Origin: Macrostomum lignano
Lineage: Eukaryota
DNA length: 64,000 bases
Assembly (NCBI GenBank): GCA_002269645.1
Contig: NIVC01001184.1
Coordinates: 248,001-312,000, forward strand
Direction of reading: 5' to 3'
The position numbers were made by a program, and so were the translations under genes. The notes beneath the pieces were generated by a model. The model was given only the letters and a program-made list of their open reading frames with translations, did not search any database and was not told where the DNA came from. Positions 20,110 through 56,122 of the stretch are shown one piece after another (the stretch's first letter is position 1; each line of letters opens with the position of its first letter).

Positions 20110-20400
20110 CTTGGGCATAGTCTGCACCCGAGAGTCGTTAGTAACGGTTCCCACGGTGACAACAATGCGGCCCTCGCGATTCGGTTTGCGCAGCATTCGG
20201 CCCAGACGAGCCAGAGACAGCGGGCCCCGATTGGCCCGGCTCATGAACAGGCGGCGAAGGATGATCTTGTTGAATTTGGCGCCAGTGCGGCGGGCCAGGA
20301 ATCGGTAGAGTTTCACCAGCAGGCGCAGATAGACATCGTCGGATTTCGGATTGGTGCGACGCACCTTGCGATCGTTCTTGTGGCAGATGTCAACGCCCAT
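20110..20400 (-). CDS. RPL18: 60S ribosomal protein L18, exon 1
   Basis: [15 protein letters not shown]...[16 protein letters not shown]; donor AAG|GTTTGT at 20109, phase 0; 187 aa spliced. Confidence 0.97.
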
Positions 20401-20963
20401 TGCTGTGGGTTTTAATTAATCATCATTCAATCAATTCATTTTCTGGCCCTAAAAATTGCCATTCTGCTTTAAATGTATTAAAAACCAATAGAAATATTTT
20501 ACCAAGCAGAAGCTGAGGACTCAACCCAAGTCTCAGCAGTAATGTATAAATGAAATAACAATAAAAATATAAACCCTTGTTAAATTAATATAGAAGCTTT
20601 GATTGCCAGCCCTTTTTCCTTATTAATGTCTAACTAACTGTTAAAATACTTTAAAGACCATTGGAGCCCTTGATTTATTGGAATTAAGGAGATGAAATTA
20701 ATGAATGTGGCCAGATTCAAAGCTTTTGTGAGGGAAATTATACACAAGCTATAGAGATTTAACTTTATTAAAAGTTATGGGAAGACACAGATTGTTTATA
20801 GGTAATTTTAGATATAAAATAGCTTACAGATATAGATATTAAGAATTTTTTTAATGGTAGATCTTTAGTAATACTTCAAATAAAAGCCTTAGAGGCAAAT
20901 AATCTGCTTTAAATTATTAAATTGATTTAGCTACTCATTTAAAAAGTCAGCCTTTCCACCTCA

Positions 20964-37009: not shown

Positions 37010-37346
37010 GACTAGAAAAGGCACACTTGAGCACAAGCACAACAAAAATTTCCATCAGAACGTCTTTTGCCTGATTGCTCGCCTCCATGGCTAGAAAAGA
37101 ATAGTTTGATTAACTTGCGAAAGACACTTTGGTATTTTGCTCCATATAAAATTCGGAACCTCAGAAGGTGAAGTTTTGTCTGTATTTTGTGGCGATAACC
37201 AGCCTCCAGTGAAATTTGAGTGCAGAGTCCTGCTTTGATTATCCATGGTCAAAAGTCAGTTGCGTATCTGAGATGAAATTTCATCGACAGCTCCAAAAGT
37301 GGAAAAAAAGTCCAACTTTTAAATATTTGTAATATAAATTCTTCAG

Positions 37347-38522
37347 GAAAGCCAACCGTCTGCTGTAACAGTGGCAGCAACAGCGCCACAGTGCGTCGCA
37401 GCTGAAGCTTCACATTCATCTGAGAGCCAAGTTGAAGTTAACACACTAGTTGAACTAACAGATTGCAATCTTAACTTAGAAGCAAGCCAGGGTCGAAGTC
37501 AGCAAGCTAATAAACAACGATTTAAACAAGCGCGAGCGCCTCCGCCTGCAAAACAACAAGCTGAGGCATGCCAGTCATTGAATTTCCGTAATCCAGTAAC
37601 CGCACGTTATCCAAACACGGATCAGTTGTGGCACAGAGTTGGAGAATTATCCCTATTCGATTGGTCAGTGTCCGGCAACGAGACTTGCATAGTAGTTCGC
37701 GGTCGAGGCTTCTGCATCGCTCTAGACGTTGGCGTCTGCCCGCCGCAGGCTGTGGACGCCGATCACGTGTTTATTAGTCACGGTCACGTTGATCATTGCG
37801 GCGCATTGCACATGCATATTAGAAAGCGTCAGTTGCTTAGACTGCCACCGGCTGTCTACTACATGCCCGAATGTCTAATAAATCCAATGCAATCTACATT
37901 GGCTGCATTTGTTACCATGCAAGGTGACAGCGACTATGCGGAAATGGTGTCCAACTCTAGACTTGTCGGTTTGAAAGTTGGCGATCGAGTTCCAATTAGT
38001 AATGACAATAATCAGCCTGCCGATGCAGCCAGTCTGACCTTGAGCGTATTCGCTACTGATCATCGGGTGCCCAGTTTGGGCTGCATATTGCGCCGTAGAC
38101 ACATCGTTTTGCTGCCTGAATGTCGTCGACTGAGCCAGGATGAGCTGCGAGCACGGGTTGCTCAGGGCCTGCCAGTGCGCGGTCCCGAGTGGGAGCCGTT
38201 GCTAGGCTACACTGGAGACACCAGATTCAATGTATTCTTAACGCCGCAAGATCCGGACTTGTTGCGCGTTAGATTGCTCATTTCCGAGTTGACATTTTTG
38301 AGTGGTTCGATTGAACGCGCAGATAGTTTTGGACATTGTCACGTTGATCAATTTGCGCAGCATTGGAGACTGTTTGGCGCTGTGAATCGGCTTGTGTTTG
38401 TGCACTTTAGCAATAAGGTTTTGCCGGAAGAGATTCTTGAGCGGGTGTACTCAACTTTGCCTCAACAGCTGGGTCGCAGAGTCTACTGCGGACTGATTGC
38501 CAAGAGATTGCTGTATTCATGA
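37347..38522 (+). CDS. tRNase Z short form, TM/plant type (metallo-beta-lactamase fold), copy A; intronless, opens at a splice acceptor
   Basis: WSVSGxETC, ALDVGVCP, SHGHVDH, TDHRVPS, YTGDT, SELT, GHCH and VHFS; TTCTTCAG acceptor at 37346 phase 0 with in-frame TAA at 37335. Confidence 0.88.
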   Translation, partial: ESQPSAVTVAATAPQCVAAEASHSSESQVEVNTLVELTDCNLNLEASQGRSQQANKQRFKQARAPPPAKQQAEACQSLNFRNPVTARYPNTDQLWHRVGELSLFDWSVSGNETCIVVRGRGFCIALDVGVCPPQAVDADHVFISHGHVDHCGALHMHIRKRQLLRLPPAVYYMPECLINPMQSTLAAFVTMQGDSDYAEMVSNSRLVGLKVGDRVPISNDNNQPADAASLTLSVFATDHRVPSLGCILRRRHIVLLPECRRLSQDELRARVAQGLPVRGPEWEPLLGYTGDTRFNVFLTPQDPDLLRVRLLISELTFLSGSIERADSFGHCHVDQFAQHWRLFGAVNRLVFVHFSNKVLPEEILERVYSTLPQQLGRRVYCGLIAKRLLYS

Positions 38523-43727: not shown

Positions 43728-44756
43728 ATGTCCCATAATGACGAAGGTGCAGAGACCGCCAAAGCGGCCAGTTGGGTCGAGTTTTTCGCCGACCAACCGC
43801 AGAACAAGATGCGAGTGTTCGACTGGTCAGTGTCCGGCTTTGAGACTTGCATAGTAGTCCACGGTCCCAGCTTCCGTCTGGCGCTGGACATTGGCGCCTG
43901 TCCGCCGCAGGCAATCAGCGCCGATCACGTGTTCATTAGTCACGGTCACGTGGACCATTGCGGAGCACTGCACCAGCACATGCGCCGGCGTCAACTGGTA
44001 GGCCTACCACCAGCTACGTACTACGTGCCGGAGCATCTGGTCCAGCCGCTGATTGACATTGCTCGGCTATTCAGCGTCGTACATGGCGACGAAGACGAGG
44101 ACAACGAAGGAGGTTCTGCGAAACTGTCGACGAAAGATAAAAAATCCAAGAAAGAGGATGCCACTGTCGCAGACGGTGCCTCAGCCGAAGCTGGGAGTGA
44201 CGAAATAAGAATCTACGGCAAAATTGTAGCCGCTAGTCCGGGTGACGATTTGCAACTGTCAAAGAATCTTCGCATCCGTCCGTTCGCCACAGATCATCGA
44301 GTACCCAGCATTGGCTGTCTGGTGTACTGCAAGCGCAGCCAGTTGCTACCCAAATATGCCGGCCTGCCGGGTGCGGAACTTGCCGAACTGGCTCGCAACG
44401 GGGAACAGTTACGAGAGGCTCGGTGGGAACCCGCTATCGGCTACACAGGGGATACCAGATTCACTGTTCTAGCGTGTCCTCCCGAGCCCGACCTGCTCAA
44501 GGTTAGACTGTTAGTCTGCGAGCTAACCTACGTTGAAGGGCCGACAGATACAGCTGAGAAATACGGTCATTGTCATTTGCACGATTTCTCGTCGCGTGCA
44601 AATCTGTTTGACAATGTTGGCCAGCTGTTGTTTGTGCACTTCAGTAGGCGGCACTCGCCTAACCAAGTGATTAACGCTGTGCTGACTTCGCTGCCAGAGG
44701 AGCTACGGTCTAAAGTCTACTGCGGACTCAATGCTCTGCGGTTCTATCGTTCCTGA
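43728..44756 (+). CDS. tRNase Z short form, TM/plant type, copy B, 342 aa, intronless
   Basis: Own ATG; WSVSGFETC, LDIGACP, SHGHVDH, TDHRVPS, short arm KRSQLLPKYAGLPGAELAEL, YTGDT, CELT, YGHCH and VHFS. Confidence 0.9.
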   Translation: MSHNDEGAETAKAASWVEFFADQPQNKMRVFDWSVSGFETCIVVHGPSFRLALDIGACPPQAISADHVFISHGHVDHCGALHQHMRRRQLVGLPPATYYVPEHLVQPLIDIARLFSVVHGDEDEDNEGGSAKLSTKDKKSKKEDATVADGASAEAGSDEIRIYGKIVAASPGDDLQLSKNLRIRPFATDHRVPSIGCLVYCKRSQLLPKYAGLPGAELAELARNGEQLREARWEPAIGYTGDTRFTVLACPPEPDLLKVRLLVCELTYVEGPTDTAEKYGHCHLHDFSSRANLFDNVGQLLFVHFSRRHSPNQVINAVLTSLPEELRSKVYCGLNALRFYRS

Positions 44757-45069: not shown

Positions 45070-45713
45070 GAGTGGCCTGTTGTGTGCCTTGTCTGTCTGC
45101 CCTGTCCTATTCTGTCTGTGTGTTCTGTCTGCCCTGTCCTGTTCTGTCTGCGTGTTCTGCCTGTCCTATTCTGTCTGTCTGTTCTGTCTGCCCTGTCCTG
45201 TTCTGTCTGTGTGTTCTGCCTGTCCTGTTCTGTCTGTGTGTTCTGTCTGTCCTGTCCTGTTCTGTCTGTCTGTTCTGTCTGCCCTGTCCTGTTCTGTCTG
45301 TGTGTTCTGTCTGCCCTGTCCTGTTCTGTCTGCGTGTTCTGCCTGTCCTATTCTGTCTGTCTGTTCTGTCTGCCCTGTCCTGTTCTGTCTGTGTGTTCTG
45401 CCTGTCCTGTTCTGTCTGTGTGTTCTGTCTGTCCTGTCCTGTTCTGTCTGTCTGTTCTGTCTGCCCTGTCCTGTTCTGTCTGTCTGTTCTGTCTGTCCTG
45501 TCCTGTTCTGTCTGTGTGTTCTGCCTGTCCTGTTCTGTCTGTGTGTTCTGTCTGCCCTGTCCTGTTCTGTCTGTGTGTTCTGTCTGCCCTGTCCTGTTCT
45601 GTCTGTGTGTTCTGTCTGCCCTGTCCTGTTCTGTCTGTGTTCTGTCTGTCCTGTCCTGTTCTGTCTGTCTCTTCTGTCTGTGTGTTCTGCCTGTCCTGTT
45701 CTGTCTGTCCTGT

Positions 45714-45746
<33 letters not shown>

Positions 45747-45808
45747 GTCTGTTCTGTCTGCCCGGTTCTGTTCTGTTTGTCTGTCTGTCTGTCTCTCTGT
45801 CTGTCTGG

Positions 45809-45862
<54 letters not shown>

Positions 45863-45865
45863 GGT

Positions 45866-45962
<97 letters not shown>

Positions 45963-45993
45963 GGTTGTTTGTCTGTCTGTCTGTCTGTCTGTG

Positions 45994-46026
<33 letters not shown>

Positions 46027-46042
46027 GGTTGTCTGTCTGTCC
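45070..46042. repeat. ~33-bp TCTG-derived minisatellite merging into (TCTG)n, CCS intron 1
   Basis: Direct pattern. Confidence 0.93.
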
Positions 46043-46091
46043 TGCAGACCTGTATGATCCACCTTACTACTCCATTTGCATTCCATCCCAG

Positions 46092-46559
46092 CTGCAATTC
46101 GCTGTCAACATGACCTGTCAATCATGCGCCGACTCGGTCAGTCGAGTTCTATCCAGTCACCAGCCGGCAAGCGACTTCGCGGACATCCGAATTCAACTGA
46201 CTGAACAGCGGGTCATCCTGCGCACTTCGCTGCACGTTGACTCGGTGCTGGAGCTGCTGGAGACCACCGGCTGTCGGGCTTTGCTGCAAGGCGTTGGCAC
46301 AGCCAGCCAGGGCATGCGGGGTCAGGACTTCGCATCTGGCGTCGTACAATTGGAATCAGTTTATACTACTAATACTAGTAGTGTCCAGGGAGTAGTTCGA
46401 ATTTTGCAGCCAGATGATCAGCAGTGCCTGTTCGATGGCACAGTGGACGGTCTGGAGCCCGGCAGTTGGTACAGCCTCGAGGTCCGTCAGGGCGGTGATC
46501 TGTCTGGGGGGTCTGACACATGCGGCCCGGTGTATAATGACGGCTCTGATGATGCACAG
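46092..46559 (+). CDS. CCS: CCS exon 2 (HMA domain plus first half of the SOD-like domain)
   Basis: LQFAVNMTCQSC, VQGVVRILQ, DGTVDGLEPG and GDLS; CAG acceptor 46091, donor CAG|GTGCGT 46560. Confidence 0.93.
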
Positions 46560-46612
46560 GTGCGTTCTGTGTTATATATCCCTGTTTTTGTCTGTCTGCA
46601 TCTTGGGGTGTA

Positions 46613-47092
46613 CGCTCTCTCACCTTACAGCATTCGCTCTCTCACCTTACAGCATCCGCTCTCTCACCTTACAGCATTCGCTCTCTCACCTTACAGCATC
46701 CGCTCTCTCATAAGTTAAGGCATCCGCTCTCATCTTACAGCATCCGCTCTGTCTCCTTACAGCATCCGCTCTGTCACCTTACAGCATCCGCTCCCTCATC
46801 AGTTACAGCATCCTCTCTCTTAGCTTACAGCATCCGCTCCCTCATCAGTTACAGCATCCTCTCTCTTAGATTACAGCATCCGCTCCCTCATCAGTTACAG
46901 CATCCTCTCTTTTAGCTTACAGCATCCGCTCTCTCACCTTACAGCATCCGCTCTCTCACCTTACAGCATCCGCTCCCTCATCAGTTACAGCATCCGCTCC
47001 CTCATCAGTTACAGCATCCGCTCCCTCATCAGTTACAGCATCCGCTCCCTCATCAGTTACAGCATCTGCTTCCTCATCGGTTAGAGCATCCG
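46613..47092. repeat. 22-bp minisatellite (CTCTCTCACCTTACAGCATCCG), CCS intron 2
   Basis: Direct pattern. Confidence 0.92.
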
Positions 47093-47259
47093 CCCCTTAC
47101 TGTACTAGTATCTTTCAGCATCTGTCTCGTTTTGCGAACTCAAAAATATCTGATAGAGTTATTTCTTTAGACAGGTTTAGCTGTAAATGTTTTCAGACTG
47201 CCAAAAAGACATACAATATACCAGTACATAGAAACATACAAAAAATCAACTAACAACAG

Positions 47260-48506
47260 CGTCTCCATGGCAACTCAAATGCCTACGGCCTGACCAGCGT
47301 ACTGGCGGACGAGTTGACCTGCCCGCGGCCTCATCTAGTCCCAGTCGCCTCAGGTTTCCTATCCAACGATTTGCGACCGCTAAGCGGCTTGCAAAAGTTT
47401 CTGGCCGCTAATTTTCCCGCCCCAGACTTGCGGCATCTGAAGCGGGCCGCCCGGCCGCCTCCGCGCCTGACTGCAGTCGCCGATTTCGCGTTCTCCTTTG
47501 CCACGCCGCCGACTTACCTAATTTGGAATGTTCTGAAGAATTTTCAACGATTTGGAGACCTAAATTAGATAGCGTAGAAATTGTTATGGCGCCGGGTAGT
47601 GCGCCGCGTACCAGGCAACAATGGGAGCTCACTTCCGGTTATTGGCCCTGCTCGTTTCATGCTGACAAGTCTATCGAATCGGAGCTGTCGTTGGATTGCT
47701 TTACTAAAGCTGAAGGTGTCGCTTGTCTGAGGCATATGCTGCGCTCGCTGGCTCTCGGTCGAACTTCCGGTTCCACGTCTGCCGATACTTCCGGTCTGAA
47801 ACCCGCTTCCGGTTTCACGTCTGCCGATACTTCCGGTTTGAAACCCGCATCCACTTCCGGTTCCACGTCTGCTGATACTTTCGGCCTGAAACCCGCTTCC
47901 ATTTCCGGAGCCGCGTCTACCGATACTTCCGGTCTGAAACCCGGTTCCACGTCTGCTGATACTTCCGGTCTGAAACCCGGTTCCACGTCTGCTGATACTT
48001 CCGGTCTGAAACCCGGTTCCACGTCTGCTGATACTTCCGGTCTGAAACCCGGTTCCACGTCTGCTGATACTTCCTGTCTGAAACCCGCTTCCACTTCCGG
48101 TCCTGCATCCGCTTCATCTTCTTCTGCATTCGCCGCTCTGCGCCTCCCAGTCCCCCAATCGGCCTGCCTAATCGTGGACCCTCGCAACGACACGGTGCTG
48201 GTGGAATGCCAAGACGAGCGCCACCTCTGCCCGACCTGGCACGCCACCCTCCGGGCCGTCCAACAGCTGGGCGGCCGAGGCGACTACCTGTGCACCGGCC
48301 TGGACGCTTACGTCACCGACGAGCCGTGCCACATGTGCGCTATGGCGCTGCTGCACTCCCGGGTGGCTCGGGTTTTCTACTGCCGACCGAGGCCGCGCGG
48401 CGCCCTCGGCAGCATCGCCAAACTGCACTGCCATCCGCGATTGAATCATCGGTTCCGCGTGTACCGACTTTTCCCTCTGAGTGCGGCTCGAACTGGGGAG
48501 AGTTGA
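47260..48506 (+). CDS. ADAT3: tRNA adenosine-34 deaminase subunit ADAT3/Tad3, nested in CCS intron 2; 1-nt frameshift at ~47446
   Basis: [52 protein letters not shown] and LNHRFRVY; N-terminal homology lies in a different frame. Confidence 0.88.
47760..48100. repeat. 36-bp minisatellite inside the ADAT3 frame ([12 protein letters not shown] units)
   Basis: Unit GATACTTCCGGTCTGAAACCCGGTTCCACGTCTGCT; no stops. Confidence 0.9.
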
Positions 48507-48564
48507 CGGTTGGATTGCGATTCTTGCTTGCTCTTTAACCTGGCCCTTTGTCAGCCACCGTTGT

Positions 48565-50012
48565 CCTTCAGTTGGTGTAGCAACCTTTCAGTTGGTGTAG
48601 CAACCTTTCAGTTGGTGTAGCAACCTTTCAGTTGGTGTACCTACCCTTCAATTGGTGTAGCTACCCTTCAGTTGGTGTAGCTACCCTTCAGTTGGTGTAG
48701 CTACCCTTCAGTTGGTGTAGCAACCCTTTAGTTGGTGTAGCAACCCTTCAGTTGGTGTAGCTACCCTTCAGTTGGTGTAGCTACCCTTCAGTTGGTGTAC
48801 CTACCCTTCAGTTGGTGTAGCAACCTTTCAGTTGGTGTAGCTACCTTTCAGTTGGTGTAGCAACCCTTCAGTTGGTGTAGCAACCCTTCAGTTGGTGTAG
48901 CTACCCTTCAGTTGGTGTACCTACCCTTCAGTTGGTGTACCTACCCTTCAGTTGGTGTACCTACCCTTCAGTTGGTGTAGCAACACTTCAGTTGGTGTAG
49001 CTACCCTTCAGTTGGTGTAGCTACCCTTCAGTTGGTGTAGCTACCCTTCAGTTGGTGTAGCTACCCTTCAGTTGGTGTAGCAACCCTTCAGTTGGTGTAG
49101 CTACCCTTCAGTTGGTGTAGCTACCCTTCAGTTGGTGTACCTACCCTTCAGTTGGTGTACCTACCCTTCAGTTGGTGTACCTACCCTTCAGTTGGTGTAC
49201 CTACCCTTCAGTTGGTGTACCTACCCTTCAGTTGGTGTAGCAACACTTCAGTTGGTGTAGCTACCCTTCAGTTAGTGTACCTACCCTTCAGTTGGTGTAG
49301 CTACCCTTCAGTTGGTGTAGCTACCCTTCAGTTGGTGTAGCTACCCTTCAGTTGGTGTAGCTACCCTTCAGTTGGTGTAGCTACCCTTCAGTTGGTGTAG
49401 CTACCCTTCAGTTGGTGTAGCTACCCTTCAGTTGGTGTAGCTACTCTTCAGTTGGTGTAGCTACCCTTCAGTTGGTGTAGCTACCCTTCAGTTGGTGTAG
49501 CTACCCTTCAGTTGGTGTAGCTACCTTTCAGTTGGTGTAGCTACCCTTCAGTTGGTGTAGCTACCCTTCAGTTGGTGTAGCTACCCTTCAGTTGGTGTAG
49601 CTACCCTTCAGTTGGTGTAGCTACCCTTCAGTTGGTGTAGCTACTCTTCAGTTGGTGTAGCTACCCTTCAGTTGGTGTAGCTACCCTTCAGTTGGTGTAG
49701 CTACCCTTCAGTTGGTGTAGCTACCCTTCAGTTGGTGTAGCTACCCTTCAGTTGGTGTAGCTACTCTTCAGTTGGTGTAGCTACCCTTCAGTTGGTGTAG
49801 CAACCCTTCAGTTGGTGTAGCTACCCTTCAGTTGGTGTAGCTACCCTTCAGTTGGTGTAGCTACTCTTCAGTTGGTGTAGCTACTCTTCAGTTGGTGTAG
49901 CTACCCTTCAGTTGGTGTAGCTACCTTTCAGTTGGTGTAGCAACCCTTCAGTTGGTGTACCTACCCTTCAGTTAGTGTACCTACCCTTCCGTTGGTGTAA
50001 GCAACCCTTCAG
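48565..50012. repeat. 20-bp minisatellite (GTTGGTGTAGCTACCCTTCA), ~70 copies
   Basis: Direct pattern. Confidence 0.97.
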
Positions 50013-50249
50013 TTTTTCCACTACCCAGTCTACTCTGTACCCTAATCTTCTGCGTTCTACTTGTTCTCCTGCGCATAAATCTATGGCATAAATAAAAGCC
50101 AATTGAAGTGAAAAAATTGACGCCTGCATTTATAGCATTTTGTCTCGCTTCTTATTGGGACACTTTAAAACAATTAATGCAAATTTTTATTACAATGTTC
50201 GTATCATACTACTTTTTCGTTAGTTATTTTTTCAATCAATCCTTCCCAG

Positions 50250-50549
50250 TCTGACGATCCCTCCGGACTGGTCGGTCGAGTTCACACTGGGCCGAGTGGG
50301 CGGCTTCGATTCAGCTTGATTTCGAATCGACTTCGCTTATGGAATCTTGTGGGCCGCTGCCTCACAGTGAGCAAGTCTGCCGGTTGCAGCGAGAACGTCT
50401 GCGCCGCAGGCATTGTGGCGCGATCTGCAGGGCTATTCGCCAACGACAAACGAATCTGCTCCTGCGATGGCGTTGAAATTTGGAGCGAACGCGACGTGCC
50501 ATCGGTTGGGGCTGGTAGAGCCGCTGCTGCGGCCGCTTTGAAAAAGTGA
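50250..50549 (+). CDS. CCS: CCS exon 3 (end of SOD-like domain plus CXC domain III); 275 aa spliced
   Basis: CCTTCCCAG acceptor 50249 phase 0; AAGIVARSAGLFANDKRICSCDGVEIWSER. Confidence 0.93.
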   Translation, partial: SDDPSGLVGRVHTGPSGRLRFSLISNRLRLWNLVGRCLTVSKSAGCSENVCAAGIVARSAGLFANDKRICSCDGVEIWSERDVPSVGAGRAAAAAALKK

Positions 50550-54600: not shown

Positions 54601-54637
54601 GTGAACAGCTAGGATCACCATAAACCCCAATTCGCAG

Positions 54638-55304
54638 ACCGCAGCCAGCGGACAAGTGTCCGACCAAATAAAAGTGGCCGTGAACTCGCTGCCCTACCAG
54701 CTGCTGGCGGACACTATTGGCCATAGACTATCGCAGATGGTCCCCCTATCCAGATTCCGAGGCGCCTGGACTGTTGGCCACCTGATGGACGGCAGCCTGC
54801 GCCAAGTTCGCTGGGAGCCATTCTACCATCCGGAGCACCTGCGCTGCGCTAAACTGTTATTATCCGACCTTGAACAGCTAATGCTGAGTCTACCGATGAA
54901 TCATCTGGAGATTCTATTAATAGCTGATTCGGCTACCCAGCTATTCTCACTGACCGACACGATTCATTTCTACGGTTCCGACGGCCCGAGACGGATTGCG
55001 GTGCCGGCAGCAAAGTGGAGCTTAGCCAATGGGTTTGATGGCTTCAACTCGGCGGGGCTGAGGCTGCTGCTCACTGAGAAGAACACGTATCCTGGTGCAC
55101 AGTCCGCTGGGATGCTGCTGTCGCCTGGGCTCGCTGTTGAAGCTAGAATCAGCATGCTGGAGACGAGGCACAATGTTGCCGAGTTCGGCGAAGAAGACTG
55201 CCTCGGCAAAGAGGTTGCCGGGCGCACCGTGTACTTTCTTAATCCTTACGATCATGCTAATCCGTACGAGTTTCGGTACAGCCAGGATTACTGCTATTAT
55301 GCGG
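54638..55304 (+). CDS. DEG/ENaC exon 2
   Basis: TTCGCAG acceptor 54637; donor G|GTGAGT 55305, phase 1. Confidence 0.82.
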
Positions 55305-55400
55305 GTGAGTGGGTGGGGCTTGAGGTAGTGTATGGTTGTGGTAACCCTAACCCTAGACCCTAACCCCACCCCAACCCTGAACCGATCAACCGCTTGCCAG

Positions 55401-56122
55401 AACTCCTCAGGCGGCAGTTTGGGCACTTCAACTGCAGCGAAGGCCAGTACCCCGCGCCGATGCCCGTCGTCAGCCCCGGCGGCGATGGCAAAGTGACTCT
55501 GGGCAGCTGCTACAACTGGTCTCTAGCCGCATCAATGTCATTCGGAGACGGCCTCAATCTCACCACTTTGAGAGCCGCACCGCGAGACGCGGCTCTCGCC
55601 TGCGCCAAGCAAAGACCCTGCCAACGACGGACCTACAGCGTGGCCTGGTCTGCGGCCATGTGGCCAAGCGAATCCGACGCCGTCCCTCTGGTTGCAGCTT
55701 TCCGCAGTCGCCTACAAGAAAAGCCGGCCGAACCGAAGCCGCTGTTTCACTATCTGGTCAATAACTGCTCGGTTGGAGATGCCAAATTGTACAGCAGTCT
55801 GCGGGCTCAGGCCATGCTGCTGAAGCTGTCGGCAGCGAACCAGCTGTCCAGCCGGGTGCAGGTGTCCCTAGCTTACACCAGCTACGAGATGTTCGCAGAG
55901 GTTGGCGGCATACTTGGCTTGTATCTGGGCTGCTCTATTCTAACCATAGTTGAAGTGCTGGAATTGTTGCACAATCTATTAGCGCTGATGCTGTGTCCGA
56001 CTACTAGCAGTAGTGATGACTGGGAGGAGCAGCCGAAATCTGACCAGGCCTCGGATTGGAAAGAAAATTCAACACCGGCAACCAACGAGATGTCGCTGCA
56101 GAGTCTCGAGGCCGACGGATGA
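55401..56122 (+). CDS. DEG/ENaC exon 3
   Basis: TTGCCAG acceptor 55400; PCQRRTY; TM2 AEVGGILGLYLGCSILTIVEVLE with GxS filter. Confidence 0.9.

Follow-up and report, generated by a model that had tools for sequence, protein, structure and literature searches.

The 64,000 nt window of Macrostomum lignano DNA analysed here (assembly GCA_002269645.1, contig NIVC01001184.1, positions 248,001 to 312,000, forward strand) carries at 47260-48506 on the plus strand a single-exon gene that, judged by its sequence, encodes ADAT3/Tad3, the non-catalytic subunit of the tRNA A34 deaminase. The conserved N-terminal domain of this gene is read from a putative 3′ splice acceptor without any ATG in frame, and we suggest that its start codon is supplied by the spliced leader (SL) of M. 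lignano. The gene is also nested, on the same strand and in the same phase, within an intron of the gene for CCS (copper chaperone for SOD1). All positions are those of the window, and the features of the ADAT3 locus are as follows.

47190-47196 (+): alternative acceptor TTTTCAG, stronger than that at 47259, in phase with ADAT3 and fitting the published SL-acceptor motif.
47251-47253 (+): in-frame TAA, two codons ahead of the acceptor, at which the upstream open frame ends.
47252-47259 (+): putative 3′ splice acceptor AACAACAG, phase 0, used by all five public gene models (which are predictions, not reads).
47260-47451 (+): ADAT3 coding part 1, ending ...HLKRAA, with no ATG; N-terminus predicted after SL addition M-RLHGNS...
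47267-47293 (+): ATG at +1 offset opening an 8-codon mini-ORF (open reading frame), MATQMPTA, closed by TGA at 47291-93.
47450-47452 (+): run of three Cs where ADAT3 leaves frame 1 for frame 3; four are implied by model A0A1I8J5B7, which is otherwise identical.
47451-48506 (+): ADAT3 coding part 2 (frame 3), with the rest of the N-domain (WPCSFHADK), a repeat insert and the deaminase domain (HAT, PCHMC); TGA at 48504-06.
47763-48094 (+): in-frame tandem repeats with periods of 48 and 36 nt, between the N-domain and the deaminase domain.
50091-50096 (+): AATAAA, candidate poly(A) signal of ADAT3 and the sole such hexamer from the ADAT3 stop to CCS exon 2.

The closest proteins to the translated gene in a protein search were UniRef entries of M. 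lignano, and the deaminase domain was recognised in Pfam (PF00383, E = 1.3e-10). Mouse ADAT3 (7nz7_B) aligns across the N-domain, with its HLKR and WP-x-FH-x-DK motifs, as well as the deaminase domain; in this alignment the PCxxC zinc motif is intact as PCHMC, and the catalytic Glu of HAE is replaced, with HAT (WHATL, Thr) standing opposite mouse LLHAVM (Val). Residues K62, R63, W130, P131 and F134 are invariant in an 11-sequence alignment when the one-base shift at 47450-52 is read through. Among the window copy and ten orthologues, conservation starts at an L-x-x-VL-x-DE block, and the residues upstream of it vary in length and sequence. The repeat insert comprises about 110 residues of units beginning (G/A), and is identical in A0A1I8J5B7 and shorter in A0A1I8F9L7. 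The best relative from outside Macrostomum (P0022, with PRTRQQWE) comes from a compact eukaryotic metagenome scaffold; it was uninformative for SL use and was set aside.

A direct sequence check found that the first-pass annotation had placed the TAA, the acceptor, the start of the frame and the off-frame ATG correctly to the base. The AG of AACAACAG lies at 47258-59 and is followed from 47260 by CGTCTC, from which the ADAT3 frame runs without a methionine through the conserved N-terminal stretch that ends in HLKR (64 residues translated); the first in-frame methionine falls at about codon 110, within the conserved N-domain. The ATG-less state of this domain is real and needs an explanation. 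Since the TAA at 47251 shares the ADAT3 frame, the frame cannot be entered from upstream without splicing, and the only frame-1 stops upstream of the gene are this one and another at 46867. No AG other than that at 47258-59 opens the ADAT3 frame in the stretch from the TAA to the conserved block; for an AG, a position in phase has a chance expectation of 1/3. The segment 47224-47259 is a 36-nt in-frame GT...AG stretch that holds both the TAA and a CTAAC.

The one-base shift at 47450-52 was examined by comparison with other copies and models of the gene. Model A0A1I8J5B7 (P0105) is identical to the window at 413 of 413 ADAT3 residues apart from the run, and at 156 of 156 residues in CCS exon 1. 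Because the reading with four Cs aligns without a break to mouse ADAT3, we take the three Cs to be a consensus deletion or a difference between near-identical copies, and not the trace of an intron; it may be either an assembly deletion or a real difference between such copies. An intron was rejected as the cause of the shift, the sole frame-restoring GT-AG pair (47490-47557, as in model P0001) having poor sites and removing residues that match mouse ADAT3. Six copies or models (the window, P0001, P0002, P0003, P0005 and P0105) read the 5′ stretch of ADAT3 in one continuous frame, and the same six split four against two at 47450-52 and five against one at a G-run at 48495-98. Comparison of the 5′ end with other copies, a check proposed in the first-pass annotation, found this frame relation to be common to all six copies or models. 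At the G-run the window has GGGG and A0A1I8J5B7 implies GGG, which changes the C-terminus of that model to ...TGRVD. Elsewhere in the window, about 5 kb of coding sequence shows no frameshift. The M. lignano assembly Mlig_3_7, from which the window may or may not derive, was polished by Pilon with DNA and RNA reads.

The most interesting additional feature of the locus, which the first-pass annotation had missed, is the nesting of ADAT3 within an intron of CCS. The CCS exons were located by tblastn of the public models onto the window together with reading of the sequence.

46092-46559 (+): CCS exon 1, which starts after acceptor CATCCCAG (ending at 46091) as LQFAVNMTCQSC and ends at a phase-0 donor, CAG/GTGCGT.
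46560-50249 (+): CCS intron of 3690 nt, which encloses the whole of ADAT3 on the same strand.
50250-50549 (+): CCS exon 2, SDDPSGLV...CSCDG...ALKK-TGA, with a strong acceptor, TCCTTCCCAG.

Taken together, exons 1 and 2 match human CCS (6fp6_B, residues 14-268) along their whole length, and the alignment continues unbroken across their junction, which is spanned by the Sod_Cu domain; it follows from this continuity that ADAT3 is nested in the CCS intron, and that a cis donor lies upstream of the ADAT3 acceptor. The two sites, the donor at 46559/46560 and the acceptor opening at 47260, are on the same strand and 700 nt apart. Both are in phase 0, so that cis-splicing between them would give an in-frame chimera, ...SDDAQ/RLHGNS..., and exactly this join is predicted by models P0001, P0002, P0005 and P0105. 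The spacing of the genes does not fit an operon, the stop of the upstream Lactamase_B gene (44756) lying 1.3 kb from the CCS acceptor and ADAT3 lying 700 nt past a cis donor and within an intron. ADAT3 is flanked inside the intron by two tandem arrays, one of 22/46-nt units at 46613-47093 and one of 20-nt units at 48565-50014. Both carry one acceptor-like YTNCAG per unit (CCTTACAG and CCTTCAG, respectively), and there are 21 matches to YTNCAG in 46560-47259 and 70 in 48507-50249. Use of the candidate poly(A) signal at 50091 would imply an ADAT3 3′ untranslated region (UTR) of about 1.6 kb, within which the 20-nt array would fall.

The SL of M. lignano is a 35-nt sequence, CGGTCTCTTACTGCGAAGACTCAATTTATTGCATG, that ends in ...TTGCATG and is reported for about 30% of genes; GTAAG follows ...TTGCATG in the SL RNA gene, and the Macrostomum genome paper regards the final ATG of the leader as probably a start codon. 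All flatworm SLs end in AUG. For Schistosoma mansoni, Cheng et al. (2006) are cited as having shown use of the SL AUG as initiator; 28% of trans-spliced transcripts have this AUG in frame, and more than 40 cDNAs depend on it. Since ADAT3 has no start codon in its own sequence, an SL-supplied AUG is the best explanation, with a probability that we estimate at about 60%. The SL would be trans-spliced to the AG at 47258-59, forming the junction ...TTGCATG/CGTCTCCATGG at 47259/47260, and its 3′-terminal AUG would serve as initiator for a product beginning M-RLHGNS..., of about 416 residues once the C-run at 47450-52 is given the length that the intact copy has. The substrate would probably be a transcript that starts within the CCS intron and hence has no upstream donor; alternatively, SL splicing may compete with cis-splicing on the CCS pre-mRNA. 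By the classical rule, a cis donor upstream points to cis-splicing rather than trans-splicing, except where an internal promoter is present: with a donor 700 nt upstream, trans-splicing would be favoured only if a transcript starts inside the intron, and otherwise the SL would have to compete.

The proposed arrangement resembles the SL-AUG initiation of S. mansoni (Cheng, Cohen, Ndegwa & Davis 2006) and the 'slORFs' (PMC9851317), in that the leader ends in AUG, the recipient exon is in phase 0 with no AUG of its own before the conserved sequence, and the predicted protein consists of a methionine followed by exon-encoded sequence. It differs in that the host is a free-living macrostomid, ADAT3 is a gene not previously described as an example, SL addition and initiation at this site are here only proposed, and the recipient exon sits inside the intron of another gene. 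The proposal made in the first-pass annotation, that SL-AUG joined to the acceptor gives the full protein, stands as far as the ending of the leader in ATG, the documented flatworm precedents and the fit of frame and acceptor are concerned, and its step of SL joining at this particular site keeps the status of an inference.

Several observations weigh against an SL-supplied start. The acceptor at 47252-47259 is weak, being A-rich and without a pyrimidine tract, and it fits the published M. lignano SL-acceptor motif [T/C]TNCAG only in its CAG. A better acceptor, the phase-0 TTTTCAG at 47190-47196, which the first-pass annotation had also missed, lies 63 nt upstream of 47259, although SL-AUG joined there would be followed by 18 codons and then by the stop TAA at 47251. 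A cis donor is present upstream on the same strand, at 46560. The frameshift in this copy, 190 nt downstream of the start, means either that there are indel errors here or that the copy is damaged, and the local geometry alone does not separate an SL-supplied AUG from a base missing from the assembly. Protein searches, an exhaustive HMMER search of representatives and exact ORF look-ups also found no SL-bearing read or transcript for the ADAT3 site. No SL junction reads were found, so that both the addition of the SL at 47260 and initiation at its AUG are inferred. Word-index and HMMER searches yielded no transcript-derived M. lignano ADAT3 protein and only fused models of the WormBase ParaSite type, the word-index negatives being weak for this locus, as that search sometimes missed M. 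lignano models with more than 100 residues identical to the query. The ORFs at 47314-47568, 47586-48503 and 43728-44753 had no exact record in assemblies, the 64-kb window held no SL RNA gene or SL-like sequence, and no M. lignano ADAT3 or CCS entry was found in the papers and supplements consulted.

ADAT3 is one of three genes in the window that start without an ATG at a phase-0 acceptor, the others being CCS (46092) and a Lactamase_B paralogue (37347). CCS exon 1 has no ATG of its own upstream of the HMA fold, LQFAVNMTCQSC being the first strand of that fold, and its opening LQFAVNMTC at 46092 aligns with human CCS from residue 14 onward. An off-frame ATG is present at 46054 in the CCS outron. 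The paralogue is laid out as follows.

37335-38522: Lactamase_B_2 paralogue, with TAA at 37335-37, a consensus acceptor ATTCTTCAG (containing CTTCAG) that ends at 37346, and an ORF of about 390 codons.

The first in-frame ATG of this paralogue is about 185 codons in, inside the conserved domain, and the sole nearby ATG, at 37568, is off frame and is the single ATG in 400 nt around the start. On this sequence layout, the paralogue is a candidate third SL-AUG gene.

The public M. lignano proteome holds five UniProt models at the locus (A0A1I8J5B7, A0A1I8H6T2, A0A1I8F9L7, A0A1I8FFT0 and A0A1I8F7R7), in which Lactamase_B, CCS and ADAT3 are fused across the proposed SL acceptors. A predictor that requires an ATG must fuse ATG-less genes to their upstream neighbours, which accounts for these five chimeric entries, and fused gene models are a known annotation symptom of trans-spliced flatworm genes (PMC12582326; Calvelo et al. 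2023). The M. lignano models resemble those published cases in joining Lactamase_B, CCS and ADAT3 at candidate SL acceptors, and differ from them in that ADAT3 is not the next cistron but is nested in the CCS intron, with CCS exon 2 after it. The ATG-less ADAT3 and CCS have in this way been absorbed into chimeric proteins, and annotation pipelines for M. lignano should append the SL AUG at mapped trans-splice sites. Between the Lactamase_B gene at 43728-44756 and CCS, the public models splice from within the 3′ end of the former (...LRSK/) to the CCS acceptor, omitting its last 12 codons and stop; this splice is probably artefactual, forced by the lack of an ATG in CCS. Between the two genes lies a spacer of 1.3 kb, most of it a (TGTC)n array (45090-46044).

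Of the alternatives to an SL-supplied start, we regard as unlikely one in which the acceptor at 47259 is used in cis from the CCS donor at 46559/46560, so that ADAT3 exists as the C-terminal part of a chimera with the CCS HMA domain and half of its SOD-like domain, or chimeras are the main RNA there. The shared phase, strand and 700-nt spacing of the two sites would allow it, four public models make the join, and cis-splicing also occurs, on average, at 66% of the SL acceptors of parasitic flatworms, internal promoters having been proposed as the cause (PMC12582326). The models, however, are predictions that need an ATG and must fuse ATG-less genes, and are not transcript evidence, and agreement in frame has a one in three chance. 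The ADAT3 acceptor is, moreover, much weaker than that of CCS exon 2, and a functional chimera is unlikely because the SOD-like domain, which exon 2 at 50250 completes, would be halved. It is quite possible that chimeric CCS-ADAT3 RNAs arise as by-products.

It is distinctly unlikely that this copy is a decaying duplicate, in which the frameshift at 47450-52 is real, no full-length ADAT3 is made and the functional gene is another, near-identical copy. Many genes are duplicated in M. lignano, a hidden polyploid, and models P0001, P0003 and P0005 also take the shifted frame after HLKRAA; yet A0A1I8J5B7 is intact and identical in every residue apart from the run, which points to a consensus difference rather than decay, and 1.25 kb shows no further damage. 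Since the 5′ end of the intact copy is equally ATG-less, decay would leave the question of the start codon unchanged.

An assembly lacking one base within 47270-47291 (at AAA 47277-79, GG 47287-88 or CC 47289-90), whose restoration would make the ATG at 47267 the true start of MATQ(N/M)...LTSVLADEL, is improbable. The restored N-terminus looks natural and N-termini vary among orthologues, and at 47450-52 this gene is one base short, a change of the same sign, when set against a model that is otherwise identical. The candidate runs are, however, just 2-3 bases long, and the rest of the window's coding sequence examined is undisturbed. The first-pass annotation had named a second missing base near 47285 as the finding that would overturn its proposal; this is unlikely, given that the six copies and models agree there and disagree at the truly indel-prone runs. 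The same ad hoc repair would be needed for CCS, and it is unavailable for the Lactamase_B paralogue, in which the ATG at 37568 has the opposite frame offset.

Highly improbable is a start supplied by other means, either an SL at the acceptor ending at 47196 (which matches the SL-acceptor motif and is in phase) with removal of 47224-47259 (with its GT start, AG end and internal CTAAC), or a near-cognate codon such as CTG 47290, since an intron of 36 nt, with GTACAT as a poor donor and just 6 nt between branch site and AG, is implausible where the only other intron examined in the window is about 100 nt, and initiation at a non-AUG codon has a low prior and would truncate the conserved block.

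The SL-supplied start may also be only one of three fates of the ADAT3 acceptor, with SL trans-splicing giving ADAT3, cis-splicing giving the CCS-ADAT3 chimera and skipping giving CCS; the start codon would then come solely from the SL, and the weak acceptor and the YTNCAG arrays would set the balance. We hold this contested-acceptor scheme to be doubtful; if true, it would make expression of a housekeeping tRNA-editing subunit depend on splicing choices on the host pre-mRNA. Acceptors shared between cis- and trans-splicing are known in flatworms and tunicates (PMC12582326; Matsumoto et al. 2010), and the likeness is that the ADAT3 acceptor could take either the cis donor or the SL and that an internal promoter would yield an outron-type substrate. 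The difference is that the cis product here would be an in-frame fusion of two unrelated proteins and not a 5′ UTR variant.

An SL-AUG start for ADAT3 is plausible but ordinary, the mechanism being already known in flatworms. If confirmed, it would add a conserved housekeeping gene to the flatworm mRNAs that are untranslatable without the AUG of the leader, and would indicate that the mechanism works in a basal free-living flatworm, beyond the parasites. The nested, same-phase layout makes the locus well suited as a natural test of how cis- and trans-splicing compete, and involves no new principle.

The ATG at 47267 had been described in the first-pass annotation as a decoy that would shunt unspliced or cis-read RNA into the mini-ORF. 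Off-frame ATGs occur at a rate of 0.0067 per nt in 5 kb of coding sequence from this window, which gives a chance of about 20% of finding one within the first 33 nt; its presence is therefore unremarkable, and the decoy role is unsupported. The claim of shunting is wrong for the obvious cis product, in which the CCS exon-1 donor joined to 47260 stays in the ADAT3 frame, so that ribosomes on the chimera would reach this ATG already in that frame. An SL-spliced mRNA would likewise place it downstream of the initiator. Unspliced RNA has no in-frame AUG, the only other ATG in 46560-47266 being that at 47187, which is off frame too. The site resembles translational decoys of the upstream-ORF type in that its 8-codon ORF overlaps the beginning of the main frame, and differs from them in lying downstream of the proposed initiator, in occurring at chance frequency and in having nothing that points to conservation or function. 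A selected decoy function was rejected, with nothing in its favour, and the ATG at 47267 is an ordinary off-frame AUG.

Two further observations concern genes elsewhere in the window. RPL18, on the minus strand, carries CCCACAG, which resembles an acceptor, two bases ahead of its own ATG at 20400-20398 (region 20398-20410); trans-splicing at that site would place the SL AUG 5 nt in front of the real start and out of frame with it. Two ORFs for an amiloride-sensitive channel (ASC), at 54605-55360 and 55364-56119, are in one frame with a single stop between them, and this stop lies within a GTGAGT...AG intron of about 100 nt (55305-55410).

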